Origin: Selaginella moellendorffii | Lineage: Eukaryota > Plantae > Lycopodiophyta | DNA: 64,000 bases | Direction of reading: 5' to 3' | Assembly (NCBI RefSeq): GCF_000143415.4 | Contig: NW_003314354.1 | Span: forward strand, 162,575 to 226,574 | In this document: positions 2,533 to 46,777 of the stretch, piece after piece | Numbering within the stretch: the first letter of the stretch is position 1 | How the letters are laid out: the number at the start of each line of letters is the position of its first letter | Made by a program: the position numbers and the translations under genes | The notes under the pieces: model-generated | Databases searched by the model: none | The model's input: the letters and a program-made list of their open reading frames with translations, nothing else | What the model was told of the DNA's origin: nothing

Positions 2533-3861
2533 ATGGCCAGTGCCGCCACGCCAGTCAGTTGCAAGCTCCTGATCGAAAAGAAAAGCCCCAATCTCGCCAA
2601 TCAGAGGGATCATCTCCTCAATCTCCAGCAGCAGAGCAAGAAGAAGCGATTCAAGCCGGCTATGGCAGGCTACAATCTGGGTGAATTCTACGCCACCCGC
2701 GACGCCTGGAATTCCCGCCACGCGCAATGGCAGAGCCACTGCGCCATTGTTTCCAGCCAGTCCATCGCCCAGCCCGAGGAACAGCACGAACACTCCAAGA
2801 ACGCCGGTAGCGGTATCAATGGCGATCTAAAAGAGGGATCCATCCAGATCCTAGCAGCGTCAAACGGCGCCGCCGCCAAGTCCATGATGATGATCCTGCC
2901 CAAGCCGCTGTCCATCGCGGATCTCGCCATGCCGCCGTCGCACGGATCCACGCTGCGCGTCGCGTACCAGGGCGTCCCGGGGGCGTACAGCGAGGCGGCG
3001 GCATCCAAGGCCTACCCGGAATGCGAGCCCATCCCCTGCGAGCAATTCGAGGCCACATTCCAGGCCGTGGAGCTCTGGATCGCGGACCGCGCGGTACTGC
3101 CCATCGAGAACTCCCTCGGCGGTAGCATCCACCGGAACTACGATCTCCTCCTGCGTCACCGGCTCCACATCGTGGGCGAGGTCCAGCTACCAGTCCACCA
3201 CTGCCTCATGGCCCTCCCCGGCGCCTCGATCGAGGGGATCCGGCGAGTGATCAGCCACCCGCAAGCGCTAGCACAGGTGGAGCACACGCTGACCAACCTC
3301 GGGCTCCAGGCCGCGCGGGAAGCCGTGGACGATACCGCCGGTGCCGCGCAGCACATCGTGGCGAACAACCTCCGCGACACCGCGGCGGTGGCCAGCGCCC
3401 GCGCCGCGGAGATTTACGGCATGGACGTGCTGGCCAGCGGCATCCAGGACGATCCGGGCAACATGACGCGCTTCCTCATGCTGGCGCGCGAGCCCATCAT
3501 CCCGCGCACCGATCGGCGATTCAAGACGAGCATCGTCTTCGCGCTGGAGGAGGCGCCCGGGGCGCTGTTCAAGGCGCTCTCGGCCTTCGCGCTCCGGAAC
3601 ATCAATCTCACCAAGATCGAGAGCCGACCGCAAAAGAATCGGCCGGTGCGCGTCGTGGATGATAGCAACCACGGCACTGCGAAGTACTTCGAGTACCTCT
3701 TCTACATCGATTTCGAGGCGTCCATGGCGGATCCGCGGGCACAGAACGCGCTGGGGCAGCTCCAGGAGTTCGCGAGCTTCATCAGGGTTCTTGGGAGCTA
3801 CCCGATGGACATGACGCCGGTGGTACCGCCCGGCAAGCCCAAGGTGATCAGCACCACGTAG
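2533..3861 (+). CDS. ADT: Arogenate/prephenate dehydratase, plastid-type, intronless
   Basis: [35 protein letters not shown] motif, ACT-domain TKIESRP; N-terminal transit-like extension; first ATG at 2533. Confidence 0.95.
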
Positions 3862-4369
3862 CCGGTACCGCACGGTGCGTACTCTATGCCGCGCGGTATA
3901 CCACGTGAATCGCGCGGGCTACCACGTGCAACATGTGATTGATTTTTCTTGCAAACACACCTTTGTATTAACACGAATCTCGAAATGAATGAAATAAATC
4001 TTCCCAGAGGATGGGAAGGACACACAAGTTGATGGAAGAACATTGTGATGCCACGATTAGACTCTCCAAACTTTGTCAGGTTTCTCAAACGTATGGTGGA
4101 TTGTATTGGAAGTTTTTGCTGCCAAGCTGCACGAATCACGATGGCGATTGTGATGTAGCAACCAATTCTTTAGGTTCTTCCTCCAAAAGCTTTAATGCTC
4201 GCCAGAAGAGAGCCGCGATTTCTTGACTTAAGAAATGACTTTAAAGCCGCGGGAGTGGACTTGCGACCTGGGAATTCAAGCGAGAATAAACGCAAGTGCG
4301 CGAATTCAACACAGAAGAATATGAATTGCCTCTGAAAGTTCTTAGCTTCGTGGTTTCATGCGAGGTTCA

Positions 4370-4650
4370 TGAAGGAAATCATATATTTTCAGCTCTGCCT
4401 GAGATGTTTGAATCGGACTTTCAGGACTTAGCTCGCTTCAAGATCGGATGGAAAATCTCACTCGCGCAGTTCATGAAGGCAAAACGAGGTTTTCATGTTT
4501 GAATCAGACTTTCAGGAAGTGCTTGAAGATGGAAAAATCGAGGAAATCATTGATTTTCAGTTCCGCGAATGTTTAAAGCAGACATTCAGGAAGTTCTCAG
4601 TGCCTTAGCTCGCTTGAAGATCGAGGGTGGAAAAATCTCGCTCGTGTTGA
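4370..4650. repeat. Degenerate shuffled direct repeats of the PPR gene 3' end
   Basis: TTAGCTCGCTT(C/G)AAGATCG..GGAAAA.CTC and GACTTTCAGGA motifs recur at ~4420, ~4510 and ~4590-4640. Confidence 0.5.
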
Positions 4651-34434: not shown

Positions 34435-35299
34435 ACACTTTTGTGATCCTCCTCCAACAACATATATAAAAAATTAAACTCACTTCATTCGTATTTCACA
34501 TCCTTTTTATCTTTTCCTTAAAGAAAAAAAAGTTTTGAAATATCAAGATTTGTTATGCTTGCCATCTATGCTCAACTTCACTCTACTATCATATTCATTT
34601 GGCCTTACTATGTCGAGGTGAAGTATTATGGTTAAACTCACTATACTTATCCTTATTTTACAATCCATGACATTCATTCTTACTTCACTACAATATTTAT
34701 TAGTCCTCACTTCATTATTGGGGTTAGATTTTTGTTTGTCCCTTCTACCCCTTTTTCTGAAAAAATAAAATATTGAAATATCAAGGTAAAAAAGTGAAAG
34801 TGAAAAAAAATTGAGGAAGAAATATTATAAACGAAGAAAAAGTGGATAAAGAAGCATTGAAAGAGGAATTTGCAACAACTAACAATGCAAAAATGGGGAA
34901 ATCAAAAGAAGGACATGTGTTAAAAAATAAAGGACTTCCTATCATAAAATACTTTGATCACAATATAAGGAAAAACTTCATATTGCTCAACCTCTTTAAT
35001 ATTCAATTCAACATTTAAGACAAAAAAATCAATAGAAATGTCTACACTCTTAAGAAAACACATTAATGTGAGACACAAAATCCCTAGGCCCCAAAGTGGA
35101 GCCGGAAGGGCGCCACGTAGTAGTGGCCAAAGCGAAAGCCAAACGAGCGTAACACGTTTGGAATAAAAGCTCTAAGTTGAAAGATCGAGAGTGGGAGTGG
35201 AACTCCTAACAAAGTGCTCGAGGAACAAACACGAAGCGAGCAATAAGCAAGGATCCAAAAATAGACCCAAAAGGACCAACATATGACATGTGGAAGTGT

Positions 35300-35725
35300 C
35301 TGAGATGGACCTAAGTTAGAGTCTGAGATGGACCGAGATGGAGTCCGCAATGGACCCGAGATGGAGTCCGAGATGGACCCAAGATGGAGTCCGAGATGGA
35401 GTCCGAGATGGACTGAGATGGAGTCTAAGATGGAGTCCGAGATGGACTGAGATGGAGTCCGAGATGGACCCGAGATAGAGTCCGAGATGGACCCAAGATG
35501 GAGTCCGAGATGGAGTCCGAAATGGACTGAGATGGAGTCCGAGATGGACCCGAGATGGAATCTGAGATGGAGTCCGAGAAGGACCTGAATGGAGTCCAAG
35601 GTCGACACCGAGACCGGGACTAAGACCGAGATCAGGACCGAGACCGAGACTGAGGCCGAGGCCGAGACCAAGCCCAAGTCCGAGTCTGAGTCCGAGTCCG
35701 AGTCCGAGTTCGAGTTCGAGTCTGA
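35300..35725 (+). repeat. 12-bp/6-bp tandem array (GATGGAGTCCGA; GAGACC; GAGTCC) in LTR-B; also at 40045-40575 and 43450-43660 with different copy numbers
   Basis: Direct periodicity; source of the WSPR/RDGV/MESE ORFs. Confidence 0.92.
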
Positions 35726-38700
35726 GAGGGTGAAAGCCCAAAACGTTCGTCTCCTAGACCCTAGGGGGTTTGGTGAGCTCCAAAAGTATAGTAAGAGAAG
35801 GACTGCAATGGAGCCAGTTTGGCCAGGAAAGGCCAGTTTGGCCCAGGAAGGCTGTACCCAGTGTTGGGTGATGAGCTGCCCACTGGGAAGTCCAAGACTA
35901 GAGTGAACACGGACCGACAAGCGGGGTAGCTTGGTGAAGTGTTCAAGAGCCAGCTCTAGTTCCCCTGGGAGATCGACTGGCCAATGCTCCCAGTCCAAGT
36001 GTGGGTGGCACTACCTACTTGGATACCTGGCGTGGCTCAACGGAACCTCGCTCTAAGCCCATGGCTAGAGCACCCAAAAGCGGAAGGCGGGGAGAATACC
36101 CATGAGGCCCGCGTAGAGCCACTGTGTTCCAAAATGTTGTCCCAAAGGCCCAAACCGTGGAAAAGAGGACCGTGGGACTTAGTGGTCAAGCCTATGGGCC
36201 TCGATCCAGTGGTAGTGTTAGGGAACACGGCCATGGGCAGAAAGGGACTTGGTGGAGACCGGAAAAGGGATGTTGGGGAAGGTTATTCCCCATGTCTGTA
36301 GGCATCCTAAGGATGCTAAGGAGTGGATTTGGGACGATCACTCATGGACGGATGACCTAGTCTTTGAGAGACAGGACTGTAATGTAGGTGGTGTCAGACC
36401 ACCAATGTGACCAAGGTGAATGGGCATAGCTTTAGCGTAACAAGCTGATATTTCGGTGGTACCTTGTGGTGTCGGTCATGGGATCGGACACGTGGAGCAC
36501 TTGGACCAAGTGCAATAGTTGAGTGGCATGGATGCCATTCTGGGGGGCTAGCAAGTCCCTAAGTCCAAAATAGAACTTATGGAGGTTGTGAATGCAAGTG
36601 GTCGGAGGTGTGGCTAAATGACTAAAGTAGAATGGAAAAATTAGTCACTTACAATTTGGTATCGGAACTATTCCTTAGTTTGACTTTTATTGGTGCTCAA
36701 GTATATCACTATTGATGTTGGCATCAGAAGGTCTTAGGAGTGAGCCTATCCTTTAGGAGTAGCATGTCGAGAGGACATGGCTCTCCCCTCAAGTTCATGC
36801 GTGAACTTGGGCGCGATGTGGTGGATAGAAAAGGGCCAGTAAGGGAACGACTTTGGGATCTTGGGAACAGTATAAGGGTTTTTTCAAAGAGTTGAGGATG
36901 TGATCTAGATGAGCGTTTGACTTAGCCAACTGGCGGATGTAGTTGTGGTAAACAACTAAAGTTGGGATCACGGGAAAGATGCAGACTCCAAAACAATAAA
37001 GGAGTCACAAAATTACCCTCATATAGTTGGGGCTGGTGCTTATAAATTTGAGACTGGAATTGATGACCGTGGGAGGTTAAATATGGAAGAGGACACAAGT
37101 CCTTGAAATGGTAGCTGGGGCTACCTCTAATAAATGCTAGAACAACTCAAGGAGGTGGGGGTGTACTCAAAGGATAAGTTGGTATTCTCATCCTATGGAC
37201 AAGTGGTTCTAAGGGGCAAAAGGTTGCCCCAAGAGAACAAATCAAGTGTCGAAGTAACGCTTGCAAAGATGGTCCTTGTGAGTAGGACCTGAATACAAGA
37301 AGTTGTATTCCAATGAGCTAGCACCTCAAGAGTAAGACCTTATAGGTCGGGGGATTAGAAAAAGTCCAAGAGGCTAAATGACTTGAGTGGAGTTAAGGAA
37401 TGGTCCTAAAAGACTGATAGAAGCATTTGGACTAAGGTGTGTTGCGCCCCACAAAGGATGGGGAGGATTATAAGATCCAAGTGTGAGAATAGTGGGTATC
37501 TCATTGATGGCAAAATGTGTCATACTAAAGTCGTGGGAAAGGTGTTCCCAGAAAAAAGCAACTTTGGTGTAGAGTTGTGTGAAAAACTGTGATGAAGTGC
37601 CATTGGATAGTTGGCATGAGAAACGACTGTGTTGGTCTTGGCAAAAGATCTAGACACGAGTGCAAGTGTCATAAAGGTAGGCTAGTGGAGCCGATGGTAT
37701 GAAGACATCAAATGTGCCAAAGTGTTATACCTTGAGATTAAGTTGGCAGGTTCATGAAAACCCCTTCCAAAAGAATCCCAATGGAAATAGAAATGGCATA
37801 GCCTAAGCTGGAAGGCATGCAGTTAAAGTGTGGTGACCCAAATAATGATGAAGGTGTGGAAGCACCATCAATGAGTTGTAGGACTTGATAACTATGAAGC
37901 AACTAAACAAAAGATGCAAAATAATTGGTTAAATTGGTAGAAGGTAACTACTTAAGACTTCTTATGGGGATAAGGAAGTTAGATATACCCTTATGGGGGA
38001 AAAATTGTTTATGTTGTGAAATAGTAAGTCAATGTCGTAAAGGGAATGCTCATTGCCAAAGAAGGCCATCATTGGGACACCCAAACACTCTAAAACACTA
38101 GGAAGTGGTGTTTAGTGTCGCAAGGGCATTAGATAAAGCCCAAGGGACTAAGTCCCTAGCGAATGATGGATAGGAGGTGCTATCCAAATGTCCAAGGTTC
38201 TGGAGATGGGAGAAATCCGTCTACCTGATTTGGACAAAGTCAAAAATGGAATTTTGGCAAGGCTAGTGATGGGCATATAGAGGCCCATAAATAGTAACGT
38301 TAATCCCGGTGTGTGGGATTATAAAGTGAGCATGCCCAAATTGAGGAACCACTCCCTAAGCTATTGGGTAAGTTCATCCCTATGAATACTTGCTAAGGCA
38401 TGGTAAAAGGTTCAAAGCTATCTTCCTAGTCTTGAGAAGAATAACCAAGGGAAACATTTGAGGCCAAAAGGCAAGTAGTATTGGGATGGAACGGAACCAT
38501 AAAAATCAAAGGGCATAACCAACGGTGGTTATGCAAGTTGGGAGTGGAGAATCAAGAGGGTGCTCAAGGAGGTTACTACTAGCAACCGCAATGCCATGGA
38601 GAGTCTAAAATGTAAAATTATCCATGTTAGACCATGTGGTGAGTAGGGAGCTTGCAAAGGAGAAGCCTTAGCAAGCTAAGGGACAGAGTTCCTTCAAGGT

Positions 38701-39812
38701 TCCCAAAGATGATTCTAAGTAGCTTAGTACCTAGGAAGGCCAAGTGTAAATGATTCATAGAACGCATGAAATCAGAGTGGCACAGCAAAAGCATGGTCTT
38801 GAAACTAGCCATGAAGTGAGGCTATCAAGGTTGGGGAAGTAATTCCGAAGTGTTCAAAGAGAGGGTTTTGAACGAAAGTCGATAATTAAGGACTTTCACG
38901 CTTATGCATGAACCATGTTACAATGGCCGGATGATTTGCTAAGTGAGATTGGCAAGTTAGGGGAACAAATCCCCTAGTTGAAGGTGCTAACTTCAAAGGG
39001 GTGGCCCATGGGGCCGAGCATGGAGGAGTTCATGTATGATCATAGACTTGTCAAGTGAGAGGACTTGGCAGTGTGGAGGAACTAAGTTCCTAAGCTATGA
39101 TCTATAGCGCGCTTTAAGTACACATTGGTGCACCGGCGTGGGGAGTCATGCCAGGCATCCTATACGGTGCCATCCGTAGATGCATATACGGAGGTTAGGT
39201 TTGAGTCCCAACCCTCTAGTGTTTGGGTTCGAGTCCCAAATCACTAGGGCATGGTGATGGTTTGGAATATGAGGACACTCATATTTCGATGATCATGGAC
39301 TCTTAGTAAGGAGACTAGCTTGGGCATACCGCCAAGTGGAGGATGCTCCATAGTCGTGATGCACGGTTAAATTGCTTAGAGTGAAAGCTCAACATATCTA
39401 ACTTGAACACTTTGGTGCAAAGGGCACCAAAGACGTGGTGAATGAAATGGGGACACCCAGTCTCAGTTGCTATGGATCCTTGGCCAAAAGGGTTGGCTTG
39501 GGCGCACCGCCAAGTGTGGGGGATGCCCCCAGGGTCATAATCAACAATTTAAAAGGGCTTGGAAGACCTAATACCTATTGGCAAGTCCGGTAAGGAACCA
39601 AAGGTTAGATCACTAGGTGGTTTTATGGCTAAGCAAGGACAAGGTCCTTGTGAAGTTAAGGAATAAGGTTCCTAATTCAAAAAGTTGATTTGAATTGTTG
39701 GGGCTTGGTCAAGGTGACCAAATGGGAAGGCCACCTAAGAGAAATGAGCTATGTCAATGCAATGGCATAGTAAATCTGAGGAAAGTAGTTTCTATAAAAG
39801 ATCCAAGGGAAG

Positions 39813-41707
39813 TGTGAGACACAAAATCCCTAGGCCCCAAAGTGGAGCCGGAAGGGCGCCACATGGTAGTGGCCGAAGTGAGAGCCAAACGAGTGTAACA
39901 CGTTTGGACCAAAAGCTCCGACTTGAAAAGTCAAGAGCGGGAGTGGAACTCCCAACGAAGTGCTCGAGGAACGAGCACGAAGCGAGCAAAAGGCGAGGCT
40001 CCAAAAAGGGACCCAAAAGGACCAACACATGACACATGGGAGTGTCCGAGATGGAGTCCGAAGTGGAGTCCGAGGTGGACCCGAGTTGGAGTCCGAAGTG
40101 GAGTCCGAGATGGACCCGAAATGGAGTCCGAAATGGAGTCCGAGATGGACCCGAGATGGACCCGAGATGGAGTCCGAGATGGAGTCCGAGATGGAGTCCG
40201 AGATGGAGTCCGAGATGGAGTCCGAGATGGAGTCCGAGATGGAGTCCGAGATGGACCCGAGATGGACCCGAAATGGAGTCCGAGATGGAGTCCGAGATGG
40301 ACCCGAAATAGAGTCCGAGATGGAGTCCGAGATGGACCCGAGATGGAGTCCAAGATGGAGTCCGAGATGGACCCGAGATGGACCCGAGATGGAGTCCGCG
40401 ATGGAGTCCGAGATGGAGTCCGAAGTCGAGACCGAGACCGGGACCGAGACCGAGACCGAGACCGAGATCGGGACCGAGACCGAGATTGAGGCCGAGGCCG
40501 AGACCGAGCCCGAGCCCGAGCCCGAGTCCGAATCCGAATCCGAGTCCGAGTCCGAGTCCGAGTCCGAGTCCGGAGCCTGAGAGGGTGAAAGCCCAAAGCG
40601 TTCGTCTCCCAGACCCTGGGGGGTTTGGTGAGCTCCAAAAGTATAGTAGGGGGAGGACTGCAATGGAGCCAGTTTGGCCAGGAAAGGCCAGTTTGGCCCA
40701 GGAAGGCCAGACCCAGTGTTGGGTGATGAACTGACCACTGGGAAGTCCAAGACTAGAGTGAATACGGACCGACAAGCGGGGTAGCTTGGTGAAGTGTTCA
40801 AGAGCCGGCTCTAGTTCCCCCGGGAGATCGAATTGCCGATGCTCCCAGTCCAAGTGTGGGTGGCACTACCTACTTGGATACCAGGCGTGGCTCAACGGAA
40901 CCTCGCTCTAAGCCCATGGCTAGAGCACCTAAAGGCGAAAGGCAGGGAGAGTACCCAGGTGGCTCGCGTAAGGCCACGATGTTCCAAAATGTTGTCCCAA
41001 AAGCCTAGACTGGGGAAAGGAAGAGGAGCAGTCCTCTGGGGTAGTGACCAAGGACACAGTCGTGTGGTGAGGAAGTCCCAGAGGACCATGGGACTTAGTG
41101 GTCGGGCCTGTGGGCCTCGATCCAGTGGCAGTGTTGGTAAACACAGCCAGGGGCAGAAAGGGACTTGGTAGGAACTGACAAAGGGACTTTGGGGAAGGCG
41201 ATTCCTCAGGTCTGTGGGCATCCTAAGGATGCTAAGGAGTGGATCTAGGATGACCCCTCGTGGACAGATGGCCCAGTCTTGGAGAGACGGGATGGTGATG
41301 CCAGTGGTATTGGACCACTAGTGCAGCAAAGGTGAATGGGCATGGCCGTAGCCTAACGGGCCGAGATGTCAGTGGTACCTTTGGGTGTCGGTCGTGGGAT
41401 CGGACACGTGGAGCACTTGGACCAAGTGCAAAGAGTGGTATTGGACCACTAGTGCAGCAAAGGTGAATGGGCATGGCCGTAGCCTAACGGGCCGAGATGT
41501 CAGTGGTACCTTTGGGTGTCGGTCGTGGGATCGGACACGTGGAGCACTTGGACCAAGTGCAAAGGTTGAGTGGCATGGATGCCATTCTCGGGGCTAGCAA
41601 GCCCCAAGTCCTGAATGGGACTTATGGAGGTTGTGAATGAGACTCCTCCAAGTGGTCAGAGGTGTGGTTAAGTGACTAAAGTAGAATGGAAAAATTAGTC
41701 GCTTACA
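39813..41707 (+). mobile_element. Younger family-B solo LTR nested in the B internal region
   Basis: TGTGAGACAC...GTCGCTTACA; more CG-rich than the flanking B LTRs; no TSD of its own. Confidence 0.92.
41303..41564 (+). repeat. 131-bp tandem duplication within the nested LTR-B
   Basis: AGTGGTATTGGACC...CAAGTGCAAAG at 41303-41433 and 41434-41564; single copy in the other B LTRs. Confidence 0.9.
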
Positions 41708-41731
41708 ACTTTTTAAGCTCGCTTACAACAA

Positions 41732-42324
41732 TGTAAGCTCCTAAGTTTGGACTTCCCGGGAGGTTACCCAGCCCAGTACTATTCAAACCCAAGGACGCTT
41801 AACCCCAAATATCCCAAGACCCTTAACCGATTGGAAAAAGGGGTGCACTCTTGTTCATGGGCCCTTTCCCTCTATATTTGAACCCCATGGATCGTCTCTC
41901 AAGTCGTTCCTTTTGGTTGCTTACAATCCACCACGCTTCCCTACAAGTTCACGCCCTCGTGAACGGAAGCTGAGAGCCGCAGCTCTCCCGAGAGCCCCGC
42001 TCTCTTGACACCCTACCCCTCGGGTCGAGCCCAGCGGGAGCAAACTGGACCAGCCAGATGTCAATCAACATGTGGTGTGATTCCCCTAGCCAACCAACAG
42101 AGTCGGACCTAAGACCGCTCCGATACCAAATGTAAGCTCCTAAGTTTGGACTTCCCGGGAGGTCACCCAGCCCAGTACTATTCAAACCCAAGGACGCTTA
42201 ACCCCAAATATCCCAAGACCCTTAACCGATTGGAAAAGGGGGTGCACTCTTGTTCATGGGCCCTTTCCCTCTATATTTGAACCCCATGGATCGTCTCTCA
42301 AGTCGTTCCCTTTGGTTGCTTACA
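41732..42324 (-). mobile_element. Complete Cassandra-type TRIM (593 bp) with a 5S rRNA-derived segment in each LTR
   Basis: 194-bp LTRs at 42324-42131 (5') and 41925-41732 (3'), 3 substitutions seen. PBS TGGTATCGGAGC, PPT GGGAAGCGTGGTGGAT, 205-bp noncoding interior. Confidence 0.93.
41749..41803 (-). promoter_or_regulatory. 5S rRNA-like Pol III internal control region (A-box/IE/C-box) in the Cassandra 3' LTR; second copy at 42148-42202
   Basis: GTTAAGCGTCCTTGGGTTTGAATAGTACTGGGCTGGGTRACCTCCCGGGAAGTCC aligns with plant 5S GTTAAGCG..CTTGGG...TAGTACT.GGATGGGTGACCTCC.GGGAAGTCC. Confidence 0.9.
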
Positions 42325-44038
42325 GGAGGGTCTCAAAGGTTGGGCCGTGGATAGAGCCCATAACAGTAAATGTTAAAGAGACGTACTAGGGGTGAACACC
42401 CTCTGGACTTGGCAAAGCAAAGTGTTTTCTATGGAATCGAAAAGAAACCTCAAAACTAAAGATAGCGATCCTATGTTGCTGGGTGCAACAATCAAGGATA
42501 GGACCAAAAGACTAGTGGCTAAGAAAAGAGCCATGGGAATCAGGGGAAAGAATTCAAATGGCAAAGTTAAGCCAAGAACACTAATGTGTTGGGTGTTAAC
42601 GGATTGTGGGAAAAGCAATGTTTCCCCAAGGATGGATTCCCAACCGCTCCAATTTGGCGAAAGGGGAAGCCCCAAAAGGGGGAGTGGTAAGCCGTGGGTA
42701 GCCCTAGCACAAATTATGATAACTAGAACTTAATGCCAAATGTGGCATGATATTGAAGAGAGGATAGGATGATGGTGCCCTCAAGTAAAGAACTTCCTAG
42801 GATGGGGAAGTGGAGTTGCACCATGTGCAACGTAAGGTGTCGGAGACACCTAGGAAATTGACTGTGAGAAGTCAAAATTAAAACTTCCCAAAGTGCAAAG
42901 GTGATGTCGATGGAATCTGAGACTACTCGAGAATGAATAGTGGAATTGAGTTAGAGAGGGAGTCTCTAACGGGTTTAGTGAGAACTGAACCAATAAAAGG
43001 GAGCAAACCACCCCAGGTGGTCGAATGAGTCTCTATGTTAGAGAGACTATGCTCCTTAGAGGATGGACAAGGCATGATGAGCCTTTGGTGTCAAACCATA
43101 GACAAATATTAGCTAGGTGCCAAGGATGGAAATGGTAATACATGTGGGTATTACTTTATAAAAGGGTTTACCGTTCGATGAGGACATCGAACTTTGTCTA
43201 TGGGTGGTGGAGTTGTGAGACACAAAATCCCTAGGCCCCAAAGTGGAGCCGGAAGGGCGCCATGTGGTAGTGGCTGAAGCGAAATCCAAATGAGCGTAAC
43301 ACGTTTGGACTAAAAGCTCCAACTTGACAGGTCAAGAGCGGGAGTGGAACTCCCAACAAAGTGCTCAAGGAACAAGCACGAAGCGAGCAATAAGCAAGGC
43401 TCCAAAAAGGGACCCAAAAGGACCAACACATGACACGTGGAAGTGTTCGAGATGGACCTAAGTTGGAGTCCGAGATGGAGTCCGAGATAGACGAGATGGA
43501 CCGAGATGGAGTCCGAAATGGACCCAAGATGGAGTCCAAGATGGACCCGAGATGGAATCCGAGATGGAGTCCAAGAAGGACCCGAGATGGAGTCCAAGGT
43601 CGACACCGAGACTAGGACCGAGACCGGGACCGAGACCGAGTCCGAGTCCGAGTTCAAGTCTGAGAGGATGAAAGCCCAAAGCGTTCGTCTCCCAAACCCT
43701 AGGGGGTTTGGTGAGCTCCAAAAGTATAGTAAGGGGGAGGACTGCAGTGGAGCCAATTTGGCCAGGAAAGGCCAGTTTGGCTAGGAAAGGCTGTACCTAG
43801 TGTTGGGTGATGAGCTGCCCATTGGGAAGTCCAAGACTAGAATGAACACGGACCGACAAGCGGGGTAACTTGGTGAAGTGTTCTAGAGCCGGCTCTAGTT
43901 CCCCCGAGAGATCGACTGGCCGATGCTCCCAGTCCAAGTGTGGGTGGCACTACCTACTTGGATACCTAGCGTGGCTCAACAGAACCTCGCTCTAAGCCCA
44001 TGGTTAGAGCACCCAAAAGCGGAAGGGGGGGAGAGTAC

Positions 44039-45124
44039 TGTAAGGAACCGACTGCCTGAGATGTCATAGGCTAAAGGATCCCCGAAAGCATGACCGAAAT
44101 GACAAAGAGTTCATCGGATGGGACCGAGTCGAAGATCGAGTCCAAGACCGACTCTGAGACCGAGTTCGAGATAGAGTCCGGGATCGAGCCGAGGCCGAAT
44201 CGGAGACTGAGTTCGAGACTGAGTTCGAGACAAAGTCCGAGATCCAAATCGGGCCAAGACCGAGTCCGAAGTCGAGTCCGAGATCGGGTCCGAGACCGAG
44301 TCCGAAGTCGGGTTCGAGATCGAGTCCGAGATCGAATCTGAGACTAAGTCCAAATACTAATACGGGTCAAGGGGTGAAAGCCCAAAGCGTGCGTCTCCTA
44401 GGGGGAGGGTGCTGCAGGGGGTTCCAAAAGTATAGTAGGGATAATGAGGTCCAAGACTAGTCTTGAAGGAACTCTCCAGTGGTGCTTCCAAACTGACTTG
44501 AGGTTGAGATTGGGGTCGAGGGGCCTTGGGTGGGAGTGAGCATGGGCTTGGGTGGTGCCGGAGGGGCCACCCAGGGAAGTGCTCAAGAGCAGCTCCCACT
44601 CCCGAAAGGGAAACCGACTGCGGTGCTCCCGACTCATGTGGAGTGGTGCCCCACTGTCCTCGCCCTTCCTAGAGGCTTGGGCCTTCCCATCGGGATGGAA
44701 GTGGGGGGGTAGAGGTACCCATACCGGGCCGTTAGGCCACGGTGTTTCGCCCCGATGTCCCGAAGCAAGTGTTGCATACAAGGCTTGGGATTTAGAGGGT
44801 CCCATGATCAAGTCTTGTTGTACCAAGGGGTGTTAGGAACCTAAAGGCTTGGTGTGCTTGGCTGCTTGTGCCTGCGGGGAGTGTAGCCGAACCTTAAGTC
44901 CAGCCTAACTTGGGGAGGGGGATTGGGAGAGATTTGGGAATCTGTGGATGGATGGCTAACGCTCCGTTGCTCGTGCAGTGAGTAGTTGAAACCAAGTAGG
45001 ACCAAGTAGGAGCTGGTACAATAGGCGTGAACCTTGGCGAGGGAACTTAGCACAAGCCAAAGCAGTGTTGGTTGGATAGACGAGGTAAGCTGGCAAATTG
45101 GAAAGGAAAAATTTGTGGATTACA
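44039..45124 (+). mobile_element. Family-A solo LTR inserted in the 3' LTR of element B, TSD AGTAC
   Basis: TGTAAGGAACC...GGATTACA; AGTAC at 44034-44038 and 45125-45129; host LTR resumes colinearly. Confidence 0.95.
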
Positions 45125-46777
45125 AGTACCCATGAGGCCCACGTAGAGCCACGGTGTTTCGAAATGTTGTCCTAAAAGCCCAGACCGTGGAAAAGAGGAC
45201 CGTGGGACTTAGTGGTCGGGCCTATGGGCCTCGATCCAATAGCAGTGTTGGGGAACACGACCATGGGCAGAAAGGGACTTGATGGAGACCGGAAAAGGGA
45301 TGTTGGGGAAGGCTATTCCCCATGTCTGTAGGCATCTTAAGGATGCTAAGGAGTGGATCTGGGACAATCACTCATGGACAGATGACCTAGTCTTTGAGAG
45401 ACGGGACTGTAATGTAAGTGGTGTCAAACCACCAATGTGACCAAGGTGAATGGGCATAGCTTTAGCGTAACAGGCTGATATGTCGGTGGTACCTTGTGGT
45501 GTCGGTCATGGGATCAGACACATGGAGCACTTGGATCAAGTGCAATAGTTGAGTGGCATGGATGCCATTCTGGGGGGCTAACAAGTCCCTAAGTCCAAAA
45601 TAGAACTTATGAAGGTTGTGAATGAGACTCCTCCAAGTGGTTGGAGGTGTGGTTAAGTGACTAAAGTAGAATGGAAAAATTAATCACTTATAATTAACTC
45701 CTTAGTAACAATTGTAAAACAAAAGCTTTTAATAGCACTCACAAGTGGAGATATATATTTAATTTGAAACTCTGGCCAAAGTGACTCAAACTCTTGGAAT
45801 AAGGGATATGATAATTAATTAAAAACTCTACCAAAGAAACAAAAACAAAATTCTCAACTTCATGTAGATACTCAATATTTATATTAGTATAAAAAAGATT
45901 AAAAAAACATACAACTCAACACCAAATTTATAATGAGAATCATAAGAGTAAAAAATGATCAATGTGCTAGGAGAAAAAAACATTACAAATAAGGAAGAAA
46001 CACTAGAAATATAAAAATGTGGTTCGGCTAAAAAATAAGAAAGGGTTGGGAAAGAGTAAAAGGTAAAAAGAAAAAATCAAATAGTAGATTCAATAATTGA
46101 TAATTACCATGCTAAATCTTTGGACTATGGACAATATTGCTAAACTTATATTGAAAGCAATAATAATTTATATAACAATATGATATTAAGAGATGCAAGA
46201 GAGAGAGCATTGCTTGGAGATAATACAAAAATGCAATAGTCCAGCCCAACTCATCTTTAAAGTTATCTCCATAAAAATTAAAGTCTTCATCACAACTTAG
46301 AATCTATTTGAACTTGTAAACATTGTATATATTGTATGTTAATCACATAAAGTTAAGTATATAAAATAGTATAAATAATAATTTATTACTTTGAATGATA
46401 TAGTTGAAAGGTTAATTAAACTATAAAAATAGTTAAGTCTATAATATTGGTATTATATACAATAGCTTTTTATCCTATCATGATTTAAAATAATATCATT
46501 AAATAGTTAAATATTCTAAGTATTTAAATATATTTTAAATATATTCATTATTACACTGGTCCCTTTACAGGTTTATTTAAACAAATAAAAAATTGTTAAT
46601 AACAATTTATTACTAAATAACCCAATCTAAAATCTTGATGAAAGAGTAGACTTCACTTTATATGAATCACCAATAACAAAATGATAAGTTTGAAAACTTT
46701 AGTGATATATTTAGTATTATAGAGTATAAATTATGGTAGTATTACCTCTTATTACAAAAAAAAAATATAAAATCTAT

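Follow-up and report, generated by a model that had tools for sequence, protein, structure and literature searches.

A Cassandra-type miniature retrotransposon and a collinear block in the leader of an abundant non-coding LTR element of Selaginella moellendorffii

A 64,000-nucleotide stretch of the Selaginella moellendorffii genome (contig NW_003314354.1, hereafter the window) contains a large long terminal repeat (LTR) element, termed element B (35067-45692, + strand). The protein encoded at 2533-3858 places the window on scaffold GL377658.1 of assembly GCA_000143415.2, with its start near position 162575. A Cassandra-type TRIM (terminal-repeat retrotransposon in miniature) is nested in B at 41732-42324 on the - strand. 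The sequence directly downstream of the 5’ LTR of B is homologous to the interior of this TRIM. The reading preferred here, at a probability of roughly 60%, is that a complete TRIM interior of the Cassandra type, now diverged, lies behind the LTR and primer-binding site (PBS) of B, that this interior was captured at the PBS shared by the two elements, and that one helper probably serves both.

The Cassandra-type element and its counterpart in B

The TRIM at 41732-42324 is a young, complete, 5S-carrying Cassandra element. It is 593 bp in length, within the 565-860 bp that define a miniature element without coding capacity. It is composed of a 5’ LTR (42131-42324), an interior (41926-42130), and a 3’ LTR (41732-41925). 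The LTRs are 194 nucleotides long and differ at 3 positions (98.5% identical); the interior is 205 nucleotides long and has no open reading frame (ORF). Both LTRs match the Rfam family 5S_rRNA with scores of 31.9 and 30.5 bits (E values of 1.6e-4 and 3.8e-4), both short of the gathering score (38). Box A and box C, defined by the patterns of PMC7215508, each have one mismatch and are spaced exactly 18 nucleotides apart. The PBS (42117-42128), TGGTATCGGAGC, is located 2 nucleotides past the LTR and has one mismatch to the PBS for the initiator methionine tRNA (tRNA-iMet), TGGTATCAGAGC. A hairpin (41947-41964) and a polypurine tract (PPT; 41926-41934) lie at the other end of the interior. The presence of a Cassandra TRIM inside B, as claimed in the original prediction, is borne out by the 5S_rRNA matches, the box A/C spacing, and the tRNA-iMet PBS. 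The element has no 5-bp target-site duplication (TSD) of its own, its flanks being AACAA and GGAGG. This is a trait of the individual copy and has no bearing on its family membership. A tRNA scan of the window identified no tRNA gene.

The whole 205-nucleotide interior is collinear with B 36657-36826, with the PBS, leader, hairpin, and GTGGTGGAT tract shared between the two. The PBS of B, TGGTATCGGAAC (36657-36668), is also of the tRNA-iMet type and is the same as the Cassandra PBS at 11 of 12 positions. It is followed by the leader (36669-36785), which was delimited by alignment with the post-PBS interior of Cassandra. Next is a perfect 8-bp hairpin with a 4-nucleotide loop (36790-36809, CAAGTTCA/TGAACTTG), the counterpart of the PPT-proximal hairpin of Cassandra. 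A PPT-like tract, GTGGTGGAT (36818-36826), is the same as the final 9 nucleotides of the Cassandra interior. The match had been predicted for 36657-36785 and stands above shuffles and genomic segments; it runs further than predicted, through the hairpin and the GTGGTGGAT tract to 36826. Hairpins of the form GAGAG...CTCTC are also present, one in the B leader and two in Cassandra. A search of the window with an nhmmer profile of the Cassandra/B pair located no additional copies.

Local alignment of the post-PBS Cassandra interior (190 nucleotides) to B 36670-36826, both ending in GTGGTGGAT, gave a score that was reached by 0 of 1000 shuffles and 0 of 540 genomic windows. An anchored global alignment was also made, in which the PBS was left out and the Cassandra interior plus 60 nucleotides of LTR was compared with B 36670-36895. 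Its score of 8 was reached by none of 3000 dinucleotide shuffles (mean −27, maximum −1) and none of 3000 random genomic segments (mean −34, maximum 4). The score of the leader block by itself was reached by 5 of the 3000 shuffles and 3 of the 3000 genomic segments. In a MAFFT alignment, 142 of 234 aligned columns are identical (approximately 61%) and 44 columns contain gaps. Single BLAST high-scoring segment pairs (HSPs) between Cassandra and B have E values of 0.65 to 13, and each is non-significant. The homology signal resides in the order, anchoring, and spacing of the matches and not in single HSPs.

The final 45 nucleotides of the Cassandra interior match B 43169-43213, with a score reached by 2 of 5000 shuffles and 0 of 4884 random genomic 45-mers. 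This agrees with the match predicted for the last 45 or so nucleotides at 43171-43213. This end of B contains a perfect 8-bp hairpin with a 4-nucleotide loop (43173-43192, GTTCGATG/CATCGAAC) upstream of the functional PPT, which is the tract GTGGTGGAG (43204-43212) adjoining the 3’ LTR. The consensus ahead of the LTR-B start reads ...TATGGGTGGTGGAGT in 104 contigs and agrees with GTGGTGGAG, and the unusual tract is therefore the real PPT of the family. Similarity between Cassandra and both ends of the B interior had been claimed, and at both ends it extends past the PBS and PPT. The alignment to shuffled controls proposed in that prediction is above chance at the 5’ end and at the 3’ end.

Three perfect hairpins of 7-8 bp with 4-nucleotide loops are located 11-12 nucleotides upstream of a GTGGTGGA tract, in Cassandra, in the B leader, and at the B 3’ end. 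The arms of the Cassandra hairpin are GTTCACG and CGTGAAC. A GTTC...GAAC core is constant in all three hairpins, and the inner pairs vary yet remain complementary. Comparison of these three sequences suggests selection on the hairpin stem. Two contigs of a second organism (run X4) read TGTGTGAACTTGTAGA before position 36814, GTGAACTTGTAG being the Cassandra version of the hairpin arm. Forms intermediate between the B leader and Cassandra may occur in a relative.

The match in B probably continues for approximately 57 nucleotides into the Cassandra LTR. Positions 36827-36885 of B are a probable relic of the first 57 or so nucleotides of a Cassandra-type LTR, the start of U3. The relic contains an exact 13-mer, AAGGGAACGACTT, at 36841-36853 that corresponds to nucleotides 13-25 of the Cassandra LTR. 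The 13-mer follows the GTGGTGGAT tract after 14 nucleotides in B and 12 nucleotides in Cassandra. Within the window it occurs solely in the Cassandra LTRs and at this position in B, with 0.05 occurrences expected. Past the relic, the Cassandra LTR is not above shuffles in comparison with B 36829-37250.

The whole Cassandra LTR was also compared with the LTR of B (LTR-B) and with LTR-A, a solo LTR nested in the 3’ LTR of B. The comparison with LTR-B is not above shuffles (100 of 500 reach the score). For LTR-A the score is reached by 1 of 500 shuffles, and the match sits in the 5S-like part of the Cassandra LTR. There, 46 nucleotides of LTR-A (44509-44554) align weakly to the Cassandra sequence, and Rfam gives no 5S match to them. 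Neither LTR-A nor LTR-B has a 5S signal in Rfam at E values up to 10. A resemblance between the Cassandra U3 start and LTR-A had been predicted. It stands insofar as TGTAAGCAACC and TGTAAGGAACC match at 10 of 11 positions, but the match is short and the LTR-A alignment above shuffles lies elsewhere. The termini read TGTAAGC...GCTTACA in Cassandra, with CTTACA at the end of LTR-B and TGTAAGG at the start of LTR-A.

Coding content, abundance, and structure of element B

No ORF longer than 63 amino acids was found in B 36655-39750, and ten stop-free pieces of the B interior matched no Pfam family at E values up to 1. The longer ORFs of the window are host genes (PDT, PPR, GRAS, LRR kinase, F-box, and UGT), with no pol gene among them. 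The 7.4 kb upstream of the window (segment L001) contains no retroelement gene. A spurious ORF within the LTR (35084-35998, - strand) gave no match in a protein-homologue search. Element B has the LTRs, PBS, PPT, TSD, and long interior without detectable gag or pol that are features of a large retrotransposon derivative (LARD). It does not have the features of an autonomous Ty3/gypsy element, namely gag and a pol with reverse transcriptase, RNase H, and integrase. Without gag or pol, B cannot mobilise anything and therefore cannot be the helper. The predicted mobilisation of the TRIM by the lineage of LTR-A and element B (the A/B lineage) is not supported by the ORF and Pfam results.

Contigs from a public DNA run on the same organism cover all of 36420-40000 very deeply, with 62184 aligning at a likeness of at least 80%. 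Summed contig depth is 52k-92k over 36660-36900, and the LTR reaches 230k-368k. In a second organism, one contig runs from the end of the LTR through the PBS into the leader (36633-36806). Within 36669-36785, only two positions are listed at which nearly all contigs depart from this copy (36734, T to C, and 36743, A to G), and at both the family letter is the aligned Cassandra letter. The leader is present family-wide, and B is an old member of a LARD family that is non-coding, structurally uniform, and very abundant. Identity to Cassandra is only about 61% for the relic, compared with 93.8% between the LTRs of B, so the proposed capture would be far older than this B copy. RNA reads on B number only 8 and 12, none of which is at least 95% alike. 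One contig (run X1) joins the LTR-B end (36653) to the LTR-B start (39835) through approximately 2 nucleotides. Two LTRs in tandem, or a junction of the circle type, at some site in the genome would account for it.

Element B was delimited by self-comparison and inspection of its ends. Its 5’ LTR (35067-36653, + strand) was identified by self-BLAST and repeat families, begins with TGTGAG, ends with CTTACA, and contains a 12-nucleotide minisatellite. The 3’ LTR (43214-45692, + strand), identified by self-comparison and end inspection, is split by the solo LTR-A (44039-45124, TSD AGTAC), which was located in the same way. The LTRs of B are 1.6 kb in length, and the 5’ and 3’ copies are 93.8% identical after the nested LTR-A is removed. 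The 12-nucleotide minisatellite is common to LTR-A and LTR-B. Just ahead of a second LTR-A copy (227-1382, 85% identical), the final 163 nucleotides of that copy are repeated in inverted orientation (56-218, 99% identical).

The element is flanked by an ATTAA duplication on the left (35062-35066) and on the right (45693-45697), both on the + strand and both recognised from end inspection and a paralogous empty site. The empty site is located 7 kb upstream of the window in L001, where sequence paralogous to the B flanks is uninterrupted and has a single ATAAA at the junction. The matching flanks and the empty site indicate that the whole 10.6 kb is one insertion. A third copy of the B flanks, inverted, more distant, and without B, is present in L001 at 3858-4542, also upstream of the window. 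The repeat 30292-31683/46812-48238 was considered as a pair of outer LTRs and rejected. It consists of two UDP-glycosyltransferase paralogues, approximately 90% identical, that flank B.

Beyond the relic, the remaining 5’ part of the B interior (36886-39812, + strand) is non-coding and high-copy in the genome. It is followed by a nested composite insert consisting of a third B-type LTR, a linker, and the inverted Cassandra TRIM. The third LTR (LTR2, 39813-41707, + strand) is approximately 91% identical to the outer LTRs. The 24-nucleotide linker (41708-41731, + strand) contains a 10-nucleotide repeat of the LTR2 terminus (CGCTTACAAC). The 3’ part of the B interior resumes at 42325-43213 (+ strand). 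The parts of the interior that flank the insert (36654-39812 and 42325-43213) showed no similarity to each other, so the interior is a single one of approximately 4.0 kb that is split by the insert, not a tandem array. A tandem model with three LTRs and two interiors (L3I2) was ruled out because 42325-43213 is unlike 36655-39812.

No canonical PPT was found upstream of LTR2 (39813), and LTR2 alone has no TSD. Together, LTR2, the linker, and the inverted Cassandra form a block at 39808-42329 with flanks GGAAG and GGAGG. The block may be a tail-to-tail chimera that integrated as a unit, or it may have resulted from two insertions followed by a deletion.

Origin of the shared block

In the preferred reading, the B lineage would have taken up the interior of a Cassandra-type element or of a progenitor of Cassandra, and part of the 3’ LTR along with it. 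The PPT-to-U3 junction works in a TRIM and has no role approximately 170 nucleotides into a LARD leader, and for this reason B is proposed to have captured the TRIM-type interior. Uptake would have occurred by recombination at the PBS common to both elements. By one potential route, reverse transcriptase switched templates between a LARD RNA and a TRIM RNA in the same particle; by the other, the two PBSs recombined as DNA. A join exactly at the shared PBS is expected from the first route and equally from the second. The 3’ end of B itself holds another version of the hairpin and GTGGTGGA tract.

The cis signals common to Cassandra and B are a tRNA-iMet PBS with the same G variant, the PPT-proximal hairpin, the GTGGTGGA tract, and the CTTACA termini. 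They are consistent with a common mobilising machinery. With the structured leader and the unusual PPT included, these shared signals are the grounds for proposing that a single autonomous helper, located outside the window, probably copies and integrates both elements.

Several points weigh against this reading. The comparison is of one Cassandra interior with one B interior, and the controls are shuffles and random genomic segments, with no unrelated iMet-primed LTR family among them. The extension into U3 rests mainly on one 13-mer, and the score of the 60-nucleotide U3 block alone is reached by 147 of 3000 shuffles and 65 of 3000 genomic segments (p of approximately 0.02-0.05). The direction of donation is argued from parsimony, and the proposed shared helper is drawn from the common cis signals only. 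In addition, one contig joins B 36805 to the LTR-B start (39813) through 12 nucleotides. B thus has derivatives of TRIM size, and a deletion between the hairpin modules can proceed in the opposite direction.

That contig, a form with B-type LTRs and the leader only, bears on the original prediction that Cassandra arose from the A/B lineage (taken as Ty3/gypsy) by internal deletion, with an interior made of the B leader fused to the B 3’ end and mobilisation by A/B. It indicates that such deletions happen, both ends of the B interior match Cassandra above chance, and the CTTACA termini are common to both elements. However, B contains no gag or pol remnant, the longer ORFs of the window include no pol gene, and the Cassandra LTRs are not derived from LTR-B. 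The 5’ region of B alone already has the hairpin, the PPT-like tract, and the Cassandra U3 13-mer. A complete TRIM-type interior with its PPT-to-U3 junction thus sits in that region without any contribution from the 3’ end, which speaks against a simple internal deletion of B as the source of the TRIM. The deletion route exists in principle, but it leaves the LTRs of Cassandra unaccounted for. Descent of Cassandra from the A/B lineage is considered improbable.

Somewhat less improbable, but still unlikely, is that Cassandra and B descended independently from the same autonomous helper, each keeping the leader, the 3’ hairpin and PPT, and the U3 start. The block in B would then be the remnant not of Cassandra itself but of a mini-element that came from the helper and preceded the acquisition of 5S sequence. 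The same homology data apply to this explanation. It also agrees with the end of similarity at approximately nucleotide 57 of the Cassandra LTR, short of the 5S part, and with the lack of a 5S signal in B. No such autonomous element is present among the ORFs of the window, and the TRIM-like arrangement of leader, hairpin, PPT, and U3 must still have entered B. The explanation therefore differs from capture of a Cassandra-type interior only in the donor.

A third alternative is that there is no common descent, and that chance and convergence on the signals needed by any iMet-primed element (PBS and PPT) produced the resemblance. The E values of the single BLAST HSPs, the low identity with its gap columns, and the restriction of the controls to shuffles and random genomic segments would all fit. 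This alternative is nevertheless very improbable. The anchored tests without the PBS exclude chance (p < ~3e-4), the 13-mer falls outside any PBS or PPT requirement, and the family-consensus letters shift towards Cassandra.

A broader proposal is put forward only tentatively. The block of approximately 230 nucleotides (tRNA-iMet PBS, structured leader, hairpin with 4-nucleotide loop, GTGGTGGA tract, and U3 start) could be the recognition passport of one autonomous S. moellendorffii retrotransposon. Cassandra and the most abundant LARD would then owe their spread to carrying it. If so, the block used as a probe would pick out the Cassandra helper, at least in lycophytes.

Comparison with known systems

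What mobilises Cassandra has been an open question since the elements were first described, and PMC10886601 reports no indication of a helper. LTR similarity cannot reveal the helper because the Cassandra LTRs come from 5S genes. The block shared with B is a sequence-and-structure probe for the helper, and the two families that carry it are a natural test of which cis signals matter.

Like the Cassandra TRIMs of Kalendar et al. 2008, as cited in PMC7215508 and PMC10886601, the element described here has no ORF, a 5S-like LTR segment with box A and box C 18 nucleotides apart, and a tRNA-iMet PBS next to the LTR. PMC4717578 reports that TRIM families other than Cassandra have no 5S sequence. The element differs from known Cassandra in its lycophyte host, whereas PMC10886601 puts the origin in the ancestor of ferns and angiosperms. 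It also differs in having one mismatch per box and in the PBS relative to the published patterns, in the lack of its own TSD in this copy, and in having a homologue of its interior inside a LARD. The published range of Cassandra may have to be extended to lycophytes.

Gao et al. 2016 described TRIMs and related large elements that share LTR and internal similarity, with one case in S. moellendorffii linked to Ty3-gypsy (PMC4717578). The LTRs of those pairs are 79-98% identical. Cassandra and B, in contrast, have LTRs with no sequence in common except at the termini, and B has no coding capacity. In sugar beet, non-autonomous LTR families share regional sequence, which is ascribed to template switching and recombination, and three-LTR forms and chimeras are common (PMC13570524). 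The available part of that report describes no sharing of a module between Cassandra and a LARD; here the join is exactly at the shared PBS.

Modular behaviour is also known from the Carduoideae, in which Cassandra-like TRIMs without the 5S promoter contain the Cassandra interior, whole or in part, with unrelated LTRs (PMC10853983). As in that system, interior and LTR evolve as separate modules. The partner in the Carduoideae is another TRIM, whereas the partner here is a very high-copy LARD of approximately 7 kb that keeps the TRIM’s PPT tract, and probably its U3 start, in its leader. The locus here also suggests capture of TRIM cores as a way in which LARD families can originate, whereas small elements are usually assumed to come from large ones. 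The locus shows the Cassandra interior to be a transferable module in a lycophyte, present also in an unrelated and hugely successful non-coding family.

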